NCBI GenBank assembly: GCA_977016875.1
Contig: CDRNST010000218.1
Coordinates: 1,240,001 to 1,304,000 of the forward strand
Reading direction: 5' to 3'
DNA: 64,000 nucleotides
Source of the DNA: Pavona decussata
Taxonomy: Eukaryota
Part shown: positions 150 to 17,859 of the stretch, in pieces
Layout of the letters: every line of letters begins with the position of its first letter
Numbering within the stretch: position 1 is the stretch's first letter
Program-made: the position numbers and the translations under genes
Notes under the pieces: generated by a model
Told to the model about the DNA's origin: nothing
Seen by the model: the letters and a program-made list of their open reading frames with translations, nothing else
Database searches by the model: none

Positions 150-1060
150 AGAGAAAAAACGGACTGGAATTGCTGGGAAGACATCTGCTACATCTGTGTT
201 GTCTGAATGGATCCTGTTAGAGCAGATGACAGAACATCAATGCACTTTCTGGGCTGAGTTGATGATGGCCGGGAATTGTAATGTTGGAGACTGTTTGGGT
301 TTCTGTGGCCTTAAATGTGGCAAATGTGCGGATCTCCCAAGCGGCTTCTAACGTAAAGGTTATCGCTGTTACCCGAACACAATGATTTGTGAATGATGTA
401 TTATTCAAGAAAGTGACACAGGCATACTCGGAAAAAAGAAATCCGAGTGCTACTATCAGGAGTCGAACCTAAGACCTGAAGAACGGATTTATGTTGACGG
501 TGGACAGCACTGCTTTTTCGCTGATCTCTTTCATCATACTGCCCAGAGTGTTAACACTGACCGGGCGATTTTCGTACCAGAGGGTTTGCACAGCGCCGTT
601 TTCTTCAGTCCAGTCGCGTCGAGGAGGCTGTAAGAGAGCTTTTCACTTTGCATTCAACTTAGACAGATACAACCTCGGAGCTCGATAACCATCGGTATCG
701 CTGTTGGTCTCGTACTTGCTAGCTGTTTTCTAGAAGGTTGCCGTGTTGGGAAGCCCACCGGGATGATTCCTGGGCGACTCGTTGTGGGTCATGGTGATAT
801 AAGGCTTCCCTTCTTCATCCACGGCAAACTGAAAACTTGATGGTTTCAAGTTCTGCTGCCCTTCTCTTCCTCCTCGGCACCAGTCGAGAACTGCATGGAA
901 CCAAACATTCCTCAGCAAAGACCATGGATTTGTCATGCGCAAAACTAGGCCTTCCTTTAATTTCTTTAAATTGGCAACAGGAATGGCTTCTTTGTGCTGC
1001 TCCTTGCCTTGCTCCTCGAGATTCTTAATTTTGGCATTTAGCATGCGGTTGTAATTATTA
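150..1060 (-). pseudogene. Crypton-type (DUF3504-family) tyrosine recombinase, frameshifted and interrupted
   Basis: ORF 730-1044 (LLRNVWFH..WCRGGREGQQNLK..F) followed across frameshifts by WYENRPVSVNTLGSMMKEIS, TNHCVRVTAIT (HxxR box) and HICHI.GHRN..SLQHY, the catalytic boxes of Crypton/DUF3504 recombinases. Outer boundaries approximate. Confidence 0.75.
393..497 (-). mobile_element. tRNA-derived SINE fragment inserted in the recombinase pseudogene
   Basis: Minus strand reads AGGTCTTAGGTTCGACTCCTGATAG (B-box/T-arm like) with no complete cloverleaf; it separates AVLSTV from FTNHCVR of the recombinase. Confidence 0.6.
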
Positions 1061-1111
1061 AATACAGCGGAACTTATCTTTACACTTCTGTTATAAGGTT
1101 ACCAGTTTATC

Positions 1112-2308
1112 TTGGACCAAAGAAGTGTTGTCAGAGGAATGGAAGCACTATGCATACTGCTGAAGAGGCTGACATACCTGCGTACAACAACCTTAATCGG
1201 TACTGTGCCAAGCTACAAACTGTGTTGTGGACTTCGTTTACGCCCCCCATCATTGACGAATAGCCAATTGGAATCTGGCTGTATTGAATCCACCTGCCCT
1301 GCAAACTTATGCTGACAGTATACATCAACATGGAGTACCTCTTAATAACTGTTTTGGACTTATTGACAGGACAGTGCGCCCCATAGCCAGACCAGGAACA
1401 AATCAACGAATCCTATATAACAGGCACAAGACAGTACATAGCTTAAAATTCCAGGCTGTAGCCAGCCCAAATGGTCTTATTGCCTATTTATATGGTCCAG
1501 TTGGTAAGAATCTGATTTACTCTCTCGTTAAAATGTCAAACATAAATGTCTGTCACTGGATAAAATGGCTAGGAATCTCATACACTGAAACGTGGCCAAT
1601 ACCAAGGTTCCAGAGGCCCATTAAAAAAAATATAATGAAAAAAGAACCGCTGGCACCCAGGGTGTGTGTCCAATGGAATGTCTCGTGTATAATATAAAGT
1701 AGAATTATGTAAAAAAATATATCAGAAATGATAAGCCTGAAACAAACAAAAAAAAAAAACGAATTAAATTATTTCACTCAGGGAGGTTTACTGTGCTAGG
1801 CAATGTCATTCCCAATCCCTTTAGCGATAGAATTTCCCAATCAGACTGCTTGAAGGCCTTGAACATGTAGAGGGTACCTACCTTTTTTTTCCTTTTTCAG
1901 AAGGAAGAAAACATGATGCGGGGATGCCGAGAGAATGAGGATTGCTTCCCAAGTTGCAACATCATGCAATATCCCCTGCAGGCCAACCACTCTGTGTGTA
2001 TGGTAACCCCGTCTACCCTTTATGGGTACACTTCCAAGCCCCTTTTCGACAGGGTGTTGGGTTCACTCCCCAAATGCTTGCTTACAATAAAAGTATGAAT
2101 GAAGTCAAGAATGGTTATTTGGGGACATAGCCAATTATTTTAAATTCCTTGACTTTAAAAAAAGAATTTCAAAATAGAGCTAAGTAGCATTGGAAAATTA
2201 TATATGGTGTCTGGTATTTTAAGAAATGCACTTACTTGCCTCTATGGCAATCAAACCTCCCAGTTTTTGTAACTGGATCCTCCTCACATTCAGGATTATT
2301 TTGCGTGA
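1112..2308 (+). pseudogene. Harbinger (HARBI1-like DDE) transposase, two exons, intron 1504-1900, frameshifted
   Basis: EALCILLKRL, CFGLIDRTVRPIARPG, YNRHKTVHSLKFQAV..PNGLI..LYGPV|EGRKHDAG, LCVYGNPVY; a GT..AG intron joins GPV to EGRKHDA in frame. Confidence 0.85.
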
Positions 2309-3463
2309 ATTTTAAGTGAAACATAAAACCTCGGCAATGTAGTTTCTGTAAATAAGGCTTTCTGTATGCTAACTTTCCAATCAAATCATTTAAAAGGGTG
2401 GTAAAAACCATTCAGCTACAGCCTGGAAGTTTCGTTCTGGGTCATTTTTAAAAGGTGTACTGTGCCAGTATTAACCCAAACCAGTTATCTAAAGGTTCTC
2501 TCTCTTTTAGAACTGCAGAGAAGCTGGGTTTAGTAAAGCTACAATAATATTCCTCTTTTTGATTCTTATGTGTTGTACCTCTGTTTACAAAAGTTGAGTG
2601 TTCATGAAAAAATAAATAGTCCAGTTCCATCTCACTCTGTAGGTGAACCATTATCTCTTCATTTAGAAGCAATAGCCTAGCCTCCTCCATAGGCATCTTA
2701 ATTAACAAAGAAAATAGAACCAACCTGAAACATGGGTTTTCACATGCCACAGGAAGCCTGAAAGCCCAGAAAACAGAGACACCAGATGATAAGGCTAAAA
2801 ATTGTCATTGTCTTCACTACATGCAAACTGGGCTATTTTTTGCCATCCACAGAAAACAATAAATTTGTATATATAAATAAAGAAACAAACAGAAGCTCCT
2901 TATGTGTAGGATTCTCATTAATGGTTTATTTACGATTATCCCCAAATACATCATGGCCACTATCTGACTGCATCACATACATGGCCAAAGAACAAACCTG
3001 TTAACCGAGTTCCCAGTATATAGTCTTTGATGTTGACAAAAGTGATCAAACTAGACTCAAATAGCCCTTCTAGGGGACACATTATTCAATCAGCTGAAAC
3101 TTCATGCCAAGCCAAAAAGGGCCATAGCAACATTTCCTCAAATTGCTGAGCAGTCATGAGGCTCAACCCACTCATCTGTAATAAACAGCAATGCTTCCGT
3201 AGGCTCTAGGAATACAATATCAAGGCTAACTCAACTTGTTCAAACCAGTATAACTATTAAAAATCCAGCAATTGAAAATGGCATATGTTAAAATCTTGCG
3301 ATAAGTATTTTTTTTTTTCAATACATATTATGCAAGGTTTGAGACTCAAATAAACAGTATAGCTCCCTAACTTCTCATTTTAACATGACATATTTCACAC
3401 TGAATGGTATTTAAAAGCAATGATGAAAATGACAATTGGCAACATCATGGCTACTGTGGCTTT

Positions 3464-4181
3464 TCAAGAAAGCTTTGCATGAGACTCATAAACTGTTGTT
3501 GTTGTTGTTGTTGTTGTAGTTGTTGCACTAGCAAGGGCTGTCATGCTCTGACTCTGCTGTTGTTGTATTACCCTCATCATCTCCTGCATCTGGGCCTGGC
3601 CTTGTGCTGCCTGTTGTTGCTGCAGTGCCACCTGTGCCCTTTTCAGTTCTATTTCTTGGTCTCGTACCTTTCTTTCTGTCTTGCTTTTTTCTCTGAGGTA
3701 TCCTGCAGTGTCATCTCCACTTCTATGCCTTCGCTTAGTGCTCACTGTTTCTTCTCCCTCTTCTTGTCTTTTCTTAGTCTGGCTTACCCTTTCCATTGCA
3801 GTCTTTCTGATGTTTTCTGCCTTTTCCCTGTCTTGGTCATCTTTCTTGGCATTAACAGCAGTCCTACACTGTTCACTATCTTTCTTTCTCAGTTATTTCT
3901 TCCAATAACTGGTCTAATTCTGACATTTGTCTTGATGTTCCGCTACCTGCCTCATCCTTTCTGTTTATTTTTTGTACTTAGATTGTGATAGTGTAAACCT
4001 CTCCCTGACTGATCTCTGCTTTACGTTGAACTTTAACTCTGTACAGCTATTGAGTGACCTTGCCATCTTAGACCACATTTCACCCCTGTCGGGACTGCCC
4101 TTCGTAAATTGGAAAGGGTCCTTGTACAGTATCCCCCTACAAAGCACCACATCATGGTCATCACTCCACTCCATTGCAGCC
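3464..4181 (-). pseudogene. Harbinger accessory Myb/SANT(trihelix)-like DNA-binding protein with Q-rich tail, frameshifted
   Basis: MEWSDDHDVVLCR..RGEMWSKMARSLN..FNVKQRSVRERF plus coiled-coil/QQQQ C-terminus; convergent with the transposase as is typical of Harbingers. Confidence 0.75.
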
Positions 4182-15842: not shown

Positions 15843-16646
15843 GTTATTGAATTAAACATACGCGTAAACATACCGTTAAAACACGTCTGCTGCGGACGCG
15901 TATATGCGTCTAAAAATCTGCAGACGTGCGTCTAGTCAGACTCATTAGCATGTATGACCTAGCTCATTGTTTTAAAACTTTAAAAACACGCTTGCCGTGA
16001 GGCTTGCTGTATTTTTTGAAATGAAACAAAATGAAACGAGATGATGAATAAATCTGTAGAATTGAAGATATCAAGACCACAAAAGACAGATTTCCGTGTG
16101 TGATAAGCGCGAAACGGGCTCTGTGTAGAAAGGAATTGCCATGCTGAAAACACTGGCAAGATTTTGGCCACGTGCTAGGCAACCAAATTCCATTACATGT
16201 ATCAAGTTACATTCGGCAATAACATGATGCAAGGAAAAAAATTTACAGAGGTTCTTAGAAGAGAACCTAGACGCTTTTTTATTTAATCAACACGGGAGCC
16301 ACAGTGCCTTTCCAATTATACCCAACTTGTGCCATTTTCAGCCCTTCGAAAAAAACTTCGGAACACATTAATATGTGTACCTGTAATGGCCATGGCTGAA
16401 AAATGAGAAAATCACAAGAAAAATTAAGGTGCAAGTAAAAAAAAATAACACTCAGTCTGCACGGTCTGCACAGTGTGCACAGTCTGCAGTCTGCATGGTC
16501 TGCGTTTCAACATGACCAACCTCGAATGCTCTCTTGCCCGCACAAGCGAATGTGGAAAATTACTTCCGGTGTTTTTATTGTATTCTTTTTATGAAATTTA
16601 TACAATAAAGAATTGAAAAAATGTCACTTGTGAAATGTTCGTGGCT

Positions 16647-16692
16647 AGTCTGACGCGGCGTTTCGTCTCGGCCAAGAGACTCTTCAGAGACC
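16647..16692 (-). ncRNA. Type I hammerhead ribozyme, copy 1
   Basis: GGUCU-CUGAAGA-GUCUC-UUGGCC-GAGAC-GAAA-CGCCGCG-UC-AGACU: conserved core with stems I, II and a short III; GUC cleavage triplet. Confidence 0.85.
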
Positions 16693-16864
16693 TTTAGAAT
16701 CTGTAGGCAAACTCGTTGAGCATCGCGCTCAAAGTCCCGTTCGCAAATTCAAGATGTTAGCAGTCTGGCCCTCTATCGCAGAAGGATTCCCAACCGCACG
16801 TACACGAGTTGAAATTTATACAATAAAGAATTGAAAAAATGTCACTTGTGAAATGTTCGTGGCT

Positions 16865-16910
16865 AGTCCGACGCGGCGTTTCGTCTCGGCCAAGAGACTC
16901 TTCAGAGACC
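16865..16910 (-). ncRNA. Type I hammerhead ribozyme, copy 2
   Basis: Same motif; one stem I pair changed from U-A to U-G. Confidence 0.82.
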
Positions 16911-17082
16911 TTTAGAATCTGTAGGCAAACTCGTTGAGCATCGTGCTCAAAGTCCCGTTCGCAAATTCAAGATGTTAGCAGTCTGGCCCTCTATCGCAGA
17001 AGGATTCCCAACCGCACGTACACGAGTTGAAATTTATACAATAAAGAATTAAAAAAATGTCACTTGTGAAATGTTCGTGGCT

Positions 17083-17128
17083 AGTCTGACGCGGCGTTTC
17101 GTCTCGGCCAAGAGACTCTTCAGAGACC
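17083..17128 (-). ncRNA. Type I hammerhead ribozyme, copy 3
   Basis: Same motif as copy 1. Confidence 0.85.
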
Positions 17129-17320
17129 TTTAGAATTTGTAGGCAAACTCGTTGAGCATCGTGCTCAAAGTCCCGTTCGCAAATTATTATTGTATAAATT
17201 TCAACTCGTGTACGTGCGGTTGGGAATCCTTCTGCGATAAATGGCCAGACTGCTAACATCTTGAATTTGCGAACGGGACTTTGAGCGCGATGCTCAACGA
17301 GTTTGCCTACAAATTCTTAA

Positions 17321-17366
17321 GGTCTCTGAAGAGTCTCTTGGCCAAGACGAAACGCCGCGTCAGACT
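17321..17366 (+). ncRNA. Type I hammerhead ribozyme, inverted copy 4
   Basis: GGTCT CTGAAGA GTCTC TTGGCC AAGAC GAAA CGCCGCG TC AGACT; one mismatch at the top of stem II. Confidence 0.8.
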
Positions 17367-17859
17367 AGCCACGAAAATTTCACAAGTGACATTCTTTTTA
17401 TGAAGAGTGCTAAAAAGGCAATATAATAAATAATTTATTAACCTAGTCCGTTCGGTCATTACAAGGAAATCTCAGACCTTGGCCTTGATGTTTTGACCTC
17501 ACATCAAGGCCTCGGTCTGAGATTTCCCTGTAATCACCTCACTCTTGGTTAATAAGTGGTATGTAATCAAAGATTATAGAGTGCATTTGACACCTTAAAT
17601 GGAACAAATTTGGCAAAATCGTGCACCCTTTCATGTTTGTCTCAATTTGAATATTTGTTGTTATTTTTTTATTTGGGTGTAGCATTTTCTGAAGTGTGTT
17701 AAAAGCCGAATTAAAGTAATAAGCGAAAGTGCTGACACGCAAGTGAAAACTGCTGTTCATCTAAGAGAAAAGAAAACTACATGAAGTCTCGTGTCTGTGT
17801 GAAACAATTTAATAAACAAAATTGATGTCACATGTCTCACTAATATCAATGCATGAGAA

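Follow-up and report, generated by a model that had tools for sequence, protein, structure and literature searches.

The locus examined here lies in a 64,000-nt stretch of the Pavona decussata genome (assembly GCA_977016875.1, contig CDRNST010000218.1, positions 1,240,001 to 1,304,000), hereafter the window, to which all coordinates without a locus label refer. It contains a short array of 218-bp repeats, every unit of which bears a hammerhead ribozyme motif, and it raises the question of what kind of element this array is and by which route it came to its present site. Our answer is that the block probably arose by one recent insertion of a retroelement that is non-autonomous and belongs to the metazoan non-LTR retrozymes (LTR, long terminal repeat), integrated by the two-primer mode of Penelope-like elements (PLEs).

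Tandem Repeats Finder (TRF) returned a period of 218 bp with 2.7 copies and 98% matches at 16592-17185, and a repeat search revealed three direct copies plus an inverted arm (17180-17397), which is 95–96% complementary to them. Both programs thereby bore out the first-pass annotation of this DNA, which had read three head-to-tail units on the minus strand and a fourth, inverted one. The minus-strand units, one of them 5′-truncated (unit 61-218) and two full, are 98–100% identical (TRF, repeat search, and BLAST mapping). A perfect 14-bp direct duplication (16582-16595 and 17391-17404) bounds the whole block of 795 bp; the limits given earlier, 16582 and 17404, are the outer edges of this target-site duplication (TSD). 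An AT-rich tail (unit ~188-214) is found at the left outer end of the insertion and is missing at the other end, where the inverted arm stops at unit ~187 (window 17390), hereafter the short end. The unit is non-coding, the longest open frame in a unit multimer being 69 codons, and its GC content is 45.9%.

The site before insertion can be read from an older host repeat that surrounds the block (~30–40 copies, 73–95% identity). The two parts of this repeat are 39 nt apart in at least 10 paralogs vs. 848 nt in the window; the surplus of 809 nt is made up by the insert (795 nt) and a single TSD copy (14 nt). In the empty sites, the 39 nt correspond exactly to 16592-16595 plus 17405-17439. Because these paralogous empty sites are exact, the tandem units and the inverted unit must have entered together.

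All four window units carry what reads as a complete type I hammerhead. The catalytic core (C3 U4 G5 A6 N7 G8 A9, G12 A13 A14, A15.1-U16.1, and C17) is complete in four of four units, and direct reading found all conserved core letters, i.e., CUGAAGA, GAAA, and GUC with the following A. Stem I (GGUCU/AGACU) has 5 bp, stem II (GUCUC/GAGAC) has 5 bp and a 6-nt loop, and stem III has only 3 bp with a 3-nt loop and is marginal; the core and the three stems, including the very short stem III, thus agree letter by letter with what had been noted before. In the predicted fold (−8.7 kcal/mol), helix I is open and helices II and III are loop-closed around the core. Two units deviate slightly: 159G in the second full unit (16810..17027, minus strand) changes A1.1 to G and leaves a U-G wobble in stem I, and 141A in hammerhead 4 breaks the top pair of stem II. 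The Rfam model Hammerhead_1 (RF00163) matched over its whole length in all four units, at 16648-16691(-), 16866-16909(-), 17084-17127(-), and 17322-17365(+), with E-values of 2.5e-4 to 4e-4 in a 1.2-kb search.

As stem III comprises only 3 bp, a double hammerhead formed between two units is probably needed. Two ribozyme copies were predicted to cofold in this form at −30.4 kcal/mol vs. 2 x −9.5 kcal/mol for the monomers; in this dimer, a stem III of 8 bp forms between the two molecules around a C-C mismatch, and stems I are swapped in trans. Double hammerheads were reportedly described by Forster et al. in 1988 and by Lunse et al. in 2017. The combination of a marginal monomer and a classical double-hammerhead cofold makes the tandem transcript, according to these predictions, the likely active form of the ribozyme. 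The coordinates of all features are listed in Table 1.

Table 1. Features of the 218-bp repeat insertion and of the host repeat around it (window coordinates; RT, reverse transcription).
Feature	Position	Strand	Remarks
Left TSD copy, 14 bp, ATTCTTTTTATGAA	16582..16595	.	Last 4 nt ambiguous with unit end
Outermost full 218-bp unit of minus arm (unit 1-218)	16592..16809	-	Ends at the long site, unit 214-218
Tail, unit ~188-214, AT-rich	16596..16622	-	Between the two inferred RT start sites
Hammerhead 1 (stems I-III and core)	16647..16692	-	Predicted cut after C17 at 16652
Second full 218-bp unit	16810..17027	-	99% identical to the first; carries 84A and 159G
Hammerhead 2	16865..16910	-	Predicted cut after 16870
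5′-truncated unit (unit 61-218), inner end of minus arm	17028..17185	-	
Hammerhead 3	17083..17128	-	Predicted cut after 17088
Inverted arm	17180..17397	+	Weak 24-nt match to unit 195-218, then unit 1-194
Hammerhead 4, inverted arm	17321..17366	+	Predicted cut after 17361
Right TSD copy, 14 bp	17391..17404	.	
Older host repeat, left part (context)	16519..16591	+	
Older host repeat, right part (context)	17440..17560	+	Includes a hairpin with 38-nt arms, 17454-17538

The ribozyme and the unit were then located throughout the 602-Mb coral assembly. The 36-nt ribozyme occurs 358 times at ≤3 mismatches and a reversed control 0 times, which excludes a chance origin of the motif, and the unit has at least 336 candidate places. 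The copy-number check suggested by the first-pass annotation thus revealed a dispersed family. We sampled 40 loci and mapped the unit onto each. Divergent (-,+) arms with their 3′ ends outward were found in 27 of them, and all 16 adjacent opposite-strand ribozyme pairs in the genome are of the (-,+) type (0 of the (+,-) type). Arrays comprise 1–9 units, and the complete blocks from TSD to TSD measure 0.3–1.8 kb and consist of the 218-bp unit only. Private mutations amount to ~0.5% per arm, so the insertions are young. A 222-bp subfamily carries a 4-nt insertion after unit position 183, and its short end reads ...AAGUAUUUGACA. RNA contigs that diverge from the window at 16626 had suggested a sister family or a parent element; they were resolved to this subfamily and not to a parent PLE.

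Clean TSDs were identified in 19 divergent insertions, with two more lying in (ATT)n microsatellites; about 5 of the 40 sampled loci are located inside such microsatellites. The TSDs are 11–14 bp long (mode 12) and contain 78.5% AT, compared to 58.7% for the window. The tandem, AT-leaning, and highly identical copies of the family would also suit ordinary satellite DNA that was spread by recombination or extrachromosomal DNA circles and in which the hammerhead-like motif is incidental. We consider this origin very improbable in view of hundreds of dispersed short loci, each with its own 11–14-bp TSD, fixed outer and variable inner ends, an exact empty site, and a full ribozyme core that is kept in homologues of other corals. 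The mobile-element reading, by contrast, places the repeat in the class for which it had been a candidate at first, i.e., metazoan non-LTR retrozymes with tandem units of a few hundred bp and a type I hammerhead in each; a dispersed, TSD-flanked, non-coding tandem repeat with one hammerhead per unit, found in a coral, supports this assignment.

The ends of the arms carry the evidence on how the insertions arose. Their 3′ ends fall into two clusters, short (unit 170-191, mode ~185–188, just after ...CACAAGUGACA) and long (unit 201-214, mode ~212–214), which correspond to ~30 nt and ~55 nt past the ribozyme cut. All 21 TSD-flanked divergent insertions combine one short with one long end (median difference 27 nt), a pairing that independent choice of ends would give about once in two million. 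The resulting tail of ~25–27 nt lies on the left side in 9 cases and on the right side in 12, and arms with short and long ends showed no difference in length or in density of private mutations. Of 19 target strands priming at the short site, 15 have a terminal T, usually as part of TTT, and there is no homology to the element. At the inner junctions, the two arms stop at unrelated unit positions, with an overlap of 1–4 nt or a few filler bases, which fits two separate complementary DNAs (cDNAs) that were joined afterwards. A snap-back or foldback origin of the inverted arm was rejected, as the inner ends are unrelated (61 vs. 195 in the window) and a palindrome centre is missing. On the ribozyme-sense strand, the 3′ ends are fixed and the 5′ ends vary, so the template RNA had the polarity of the ribozyme. 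Private variants common to both arms (187G in locus L036 and 19A in locus L052) point to one template species per event. Divergent arms, TSDs, and paired short and long ends together strongly indicate Penelope-like machinery behind the insertions, as the first-pass annotation had supposed for elements of this class. Among insertions with a single orientation (L037, L051, L056, and L060), several 5′ ends were also observed at the short (~187–190) or long (~205–207) site; such insertions comprise an integral number of units and, beyond these, 9–27 nt of terminal redundancy.

A course of events that would account for this anatomy starts with transcription of the arrays in ribozyme-sense orientation. 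Hammerheads of neighbouring units would pair as double hammerheads and cut after GUC (unit 158), releasing unit-length RNAs that may be circularised by a host ligase. A PLE protein with reverse transcriptase (RT) and GIY-YIG domains, supplied in trans, would recognise the region just 3′ of the ribozyme, including the conserved GCCACGAA motif and a small AC-rich stem-loop, and would cut AT-rich DNA with a stagger of ~12 bp. Each 3′-OH end of the target would then serve as a primer within the RNA, so that reverse transcription would begin ~30 nt past the cut on one strand and ~55 nt past it on the other. From there, both cDNAs would extend 5′-ward, copying one to eight units of a template that is either multimeric or circular, and would be joined at an arbitrary point by short microhomology. 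The expected product has two divergent arms with 3′ ends outward, a tail of 25–27 nt on one side only, and a 12-bp TSD. In this scheme, cleavage, circularisation, and the identity of the enzyme are what we infer. A more specific version, which we put forward tentatively and hold at somewhat less than even confidence, regards the 218-nt unit as a natural minimal substrate of PLE reverse transcriptase and endonuclease. Its two-primer integration would be obligately asymmetric, with starts ~30 and ~55 nt past the cut on one RNA module, formed by GCCACGAA and a small hairpin whose base juxtaposes both sites. If true, this would imply a dimeric enzyme holding one RNA; furthermore, linear monomers cleaved by the hammerhead would never serve as templates, which would be restricted to circles or uncleaved multimers. 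An AU-rich hairpin across the tail was also considered, but it is weak (−7.8 kcal/mol for 60 nt) and was set aside as speculation.

Potential donors of such machinery exist in the genome, which contains at least 933 GIY-YIG candidate loci, many of them in (-,+) pairs. One PLE (L099 872-5686; G000:C179:253000-262000) has an uninterrupted open reading frame (ORF) of 1026 aa with RT and GIY-YIG domains and is preceded by a 1.38-kb inverted, 5′-truncated copy that is 99% complementary. Both arms carry a minimal hammerhead (CUGAAGA...GAAA) ~150 nt past the stop codon; the arms diverge by indels in the last ~40 nt. Potentially active, endonuclease-bearing (EN+) PLEs are, by their reading frames, present in the same genome. 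One might hence regard the 218-bp arrays as detached pseudo-LTR (pLTR) fragments of an autonomous PLE, that is, as solo pLTR tandems and not as a dedicated non-autonomous family. Hammerheads are indeed found in PLE pLTRs, which form partial tandems accompanied by inverted copies (PMC8557442), and vertebrate retrozymes are sister to PLE pLTRs (10.64898/2026.07.22.740005). We nevertheless consider this origin improbable. An RT/EN ORF adjoins 0 of the 40 sampled loci, the insertions are complete TSD-to-TSD blocks built of the 218-bp unit only, and their head-to-tail repetition keeps a fixed period of 218 or 222 bp. Moreover, the unit showed no similarity to the L099 element, the one PLE examined, and PLE protein showed none to 150 other loci, except for a fragment in L153.

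Whether the family is transcribed was assessed in assembled contigs from three studies, comprising two coral metatranscriptomes and two runs of the host species. The unit is covered at a k-mer depth of ~1,300–22,000 in these contigs, and the unique flank (16440-16478) has a depth of 0 in metatranscriptome X12 and of ~12 in X5. Carry-over of DNA alone (~358 copies) would need a single-copy depth of 4–60, which is not seen in the flank. Three runs contain the head-to-tail joint (16809->16592). The 218-bp family therefore appears to be transcribed, a statement that covers the family and not the window locus. Because such contigs carry no ends, strand, size, or circularity, self-cleavage and the formation of circular RNA (circRNA) are suggested here by analogy with the coral, mussel, and axolotl retrozymes for which experiments exist (PMC7229834).

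Conservation of the ribozyme was analyzed within the genome and among homologues elsewhere. In the genome, 82 of 107 copies share all 46 nt of the ribozyme, the others differ by single, uncompensated changes, and variation in the ribozyme is only mildly lower than in the rest of the unit (0.54 vs. 0.77–1.55 variant loci per site). A pattern scan identified homologous units with 80–96% identity, forming three subfamilies, in 82 metagenome contigs, which we take to be coral-holobiont assemblies from the names of the contigs. Many of them again show divergent arms and short and long ends. Across 51 distinct homologues, the three stems are 93% paired, compared to 23–41% in slid controls. The pair 2.2-1.2 of stem I changes from C-G to A-U in 16 of the 51, and the remaining pairs either do not vary or change on one side only. 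Stem II and loop 2, which were not fixed by the search pattern, reach 95–97% identity vs. 79–90% elsewhere in the unit, with loop 2 (UUGGCC) being 95% conserved, and the AC-rich GCCACGAA motif just 3′ of stem I is conserved to at least 90%. As to a tertiary contact of loop 2 with loop 1, one subfamily clearly shows a distal stem I with a bulge of 10 nt; this is weak in the subfamily of the window, for which the extension was not consistently supported and was dropped. Taken as a whole, conservation of the ribozyme among homologues is supportive but thin.

Several observations weigh against our interpretation, either as a whole or in parts. The RF00163 scores of the four units (27.1–27.7 bits) lie under the curated gathering score of 34; a default Rfam scan of the window is therefore blank, and the hammerheads were reported only with an E-value threshold in place of gathering scores. 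The Rfam check named in the first-pass annotation thus held for the full-model matches and fell short for the scores. The loss in score stems from a stem I of 4–5 bp and from an extra base in loop 3, and other hammerhead families in the same genome score 39–54 bits on this model. In the homologue scan, core and stem III were fixed by the search pattern, which limits their use as evidence of conservation, and the sole compensatory pair across species probably reflects a single event. Selection on the ribozyme is not visible within the genome, whose copies are too young for this (~0.5% private changes). On the RNA side, the dominant variant differs from the window copy at 5 positions and matches another subfamily, and DNA carry-over in the RNA contigs cannot be formally excluded. 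An autonomous PLE sharing sequence with the unit was not found among the loci compared. The circular monomer has a predicted minimum free energy of −47.2 kcal/mol (z = +0.46 vs. shuffles) and is not unusually self-paired; a strong self-paired rod, as in published retrozyme circles, is not predicted here. With regard to a monomer circle as template, no arm ends at the ribozyme cut (unit 158) among the 21 TSD-flanked insertions, 84A is present in two of the three window units, and the inverted arm shows 6 differences from the family consensus in 194 nt.

The likely form of the template is suggested by these last points and by the longest sampled array (L036 1035-2860; G000:C177), which comprises 8 units plus an inverted arm. 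Private 187G occurs in every unit of both of its arms, and 150A occurs in strictly alternate units (ABABAB). The variant patterns in the window and in L036 suit a template comprising two or more units, which might be a linear multimer or a dimeric circle copied by rolling circle. Ends that avoid the cut, units that differ from each other, and the ABABAB pattern speak against a simple monomer circle having served as template for integration. The same mobile element might then be copied from an uncleaved, linear, multimeric read-through transcript, its hammerhead being a module inherited from PLEs whose cleavage is dispensable or assisted by protein. This would explain why no insertion ends at the cleavage site, why templates of two or more units are implied by the heterogeneous window units and the ABABAB array, and why the monomer circle is not specially structured. 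It would also agree with findings on the Anolis PLE, whose insertion in vitro tolerated hammerhead mutations, whose cleavage depended on the protein, and for which RNA-seq reads ending at the cut were absent (PMC11167929). In contrast, related retrozymes of coral, mussel, and axolotl accumulate as circles, as seen by northern blot and RT-PCR (PMC7229834). Arrays of up to 8–9 units, with both arms 5′-truncated, would shrink with each generation if copied only linearly. Moreover, the alternating pattern is equally expected from rolling-circle copying of a dimeric circle, and no part of the unit is better conserved among coral homologues than the ribozyme with its loop 2. We consider a purely linear template rather unlikely, albeit a serious alternative, and retain a retrozyme that is apparently transcribed, possibly cleaved and circularised, and probably copied from a template of more than one unit.

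Further observations concern other hammerhead repeats and the surroundings of the insertion. An array of the 222-bp subfamily with ~10 units (L045 1999-3452; G000:C56:5968400-5974000) is split by a 1.45-kb insertion of another element, on both sides of which unit positions 95-102 (8 bp) are duplicated. Another hammerhead family, more abundant and with a unit of ~505 bp, was observed in L080-L098 (e.g., L082 1324-2671, L084 1322-2047, and L091 1417-2107). Its ribozyme (CUGACGAG...CGAAACAGCUGUC) scores 39.4 bits on RF00163, and its tandem arrays likewise have divergent (-,+) arms; the divergent architecture is hence not peculiar to the 218-bp family. A genome-wide Rfam hammerhead search returned ~83,000 rough first-look candidates, many of them over the threshold, and hammerhead motifs from several families abound in this coral genome. 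Other metagenome contigs, named Ga0314... (L109, L118, L120, L122, L130, L133, L147, L150, L167, and L170), carry an unrelated hammerhead family that shares the GAAACGCCGCGUC half and has a long stem II (UAAUGCGGG-UGAC-UCCCGCA), whose variants look compensatory (GCGGG/CCCGC vs. GAGGG/CCCUC). Next to the window insertion, Rfam matches resembling microRNAs at 17454-17538 were dismissed; they lie far below the gathering scores (mir-561, 45.7 bits vs. 90) and belong to the hairpin of the older host repeat. The left part of this host repeat is found at a depth of 1,000–4,000 in coral RNA libraries, and just outside of it lies a 9-bp tandem repeat (CAGTCTGCA, 5.9 copies, 16453-16503).

Metazoan non-LTR retrozymes have been known in corals since 2020, including a 220–245-bp family of Acropora millepora (PMC7229834), and the bare presence of hammerhead tandem repeats in corals is therefore not new. 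The 218-bp repeat shares with them the coral host, non-coding tandem units of ~220 bp with a type I hammerhead in each, a GC content below 50%, dispersal, TSDs of more than 4 bp, abundance in RNA libraries, and coexistence with PLEs (PMC7229834). It also fits the range of the retrozyme class, i.e., units of 150–450 bp that lack LTRs, a primer-binding site, a polypurine tract, or coding capacity. Its arrays are short (1–9 units) compared to those of metazoan retrozymes (PMC7229834). The window ribozyme (CUGAAGAG, stem II GUCUC/GAGAC, stem III CG-CCG-CG) differs from the Acropora ribozyme (CUGAUGAG/GGCC.../ACAGUACUGU; PMC7229834 supplement); it has a shorter stem III, with a GACGAAACGC(C)GCGUC similar to that of the mussel retrozyme. 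The earlier suggestion that the family might be undescribed is thus plausible as far as the ribozyme is concerned and does not extend to the kind of element: this is a new family of the known non-LTR retrozyme kind.

That PLEs mobilise retrozymes had been proposed chiefly because both occur together and, for vertebrates, because their sequences are related. In the young and clean 218-bp family, individual integration events now lend support to this proposal: their TSDs are exact, an exact empty site exists, two discrete start sites lie inside the unit, and a short end is invariably paired with a long one. PLE insertions are characterised by partial tandems, an adjacent inverted and 5′-truncated copy, and a tail of 30–40 bp that is often found at one end only (PMC8557442). 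[quoted passage not shown] The integration anatomy described here mirrors this study, the only one of a PLE enzyme in vitro. It has in common with PLEs the partial tandems, the inverted 5′-truncated neighbour, the one-ended tail, and AT-rich, ATT, or microsatellite targets (PMC8557442, PMC11167929), as well as two nearby internal RT starts downstream of a hammerhead with priming on both strands (PMC11167929). In an incomplete literature search, this signature of dual-strand, dual-site priming was found for PLEs and not for retrozymes. In contrast to PLEs, the 218-bp family has no ORF, and its tail measures ~25–27 nt vs. the published 30–40 bp. Its start sites lie ~30 and ~55 nt past the cut vs. 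~85–92 nt in the Anolis element, and each insertion uses one site of each kind (21 of 21), whereas the in vitro work saw no difference between strands (PMC11167929). With its naturally defined template of ~100 nt (the ribozyme plus 55 nt), the family lends itself to tests of PLE reverse transcription, and it is relevant to the question whether transposition requires that the ribozyme cleaves or that the RNA is circularised.

Two further systems invite comparison. Like newt satellite 2, the plus strand of avocado sunblotch viroid (ASBVd(+)), and the minimal hammerheads of PLEs, all of which act as dimers, the window ribozyme has a stem III too short to be stable; its dimer is a thermodynamic prediction, and its stems I and II are of normal length, unlike those of the most minimal PLE variants. 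The second is twin priming of L1 elements, reportedly described by Ostertag and Kazazian in 2001. In both L1 twin priming and the 218-bp family, the second target strand primes on the RNA, which gives rise to an inverted 5′ segment that is joined by microhomology within one TSD. Unlike in L1, however, inversion is the rule in the coral family (~2/3 of insertions), both primers are placed at defined internal sites, and both arms copy the same repeat.

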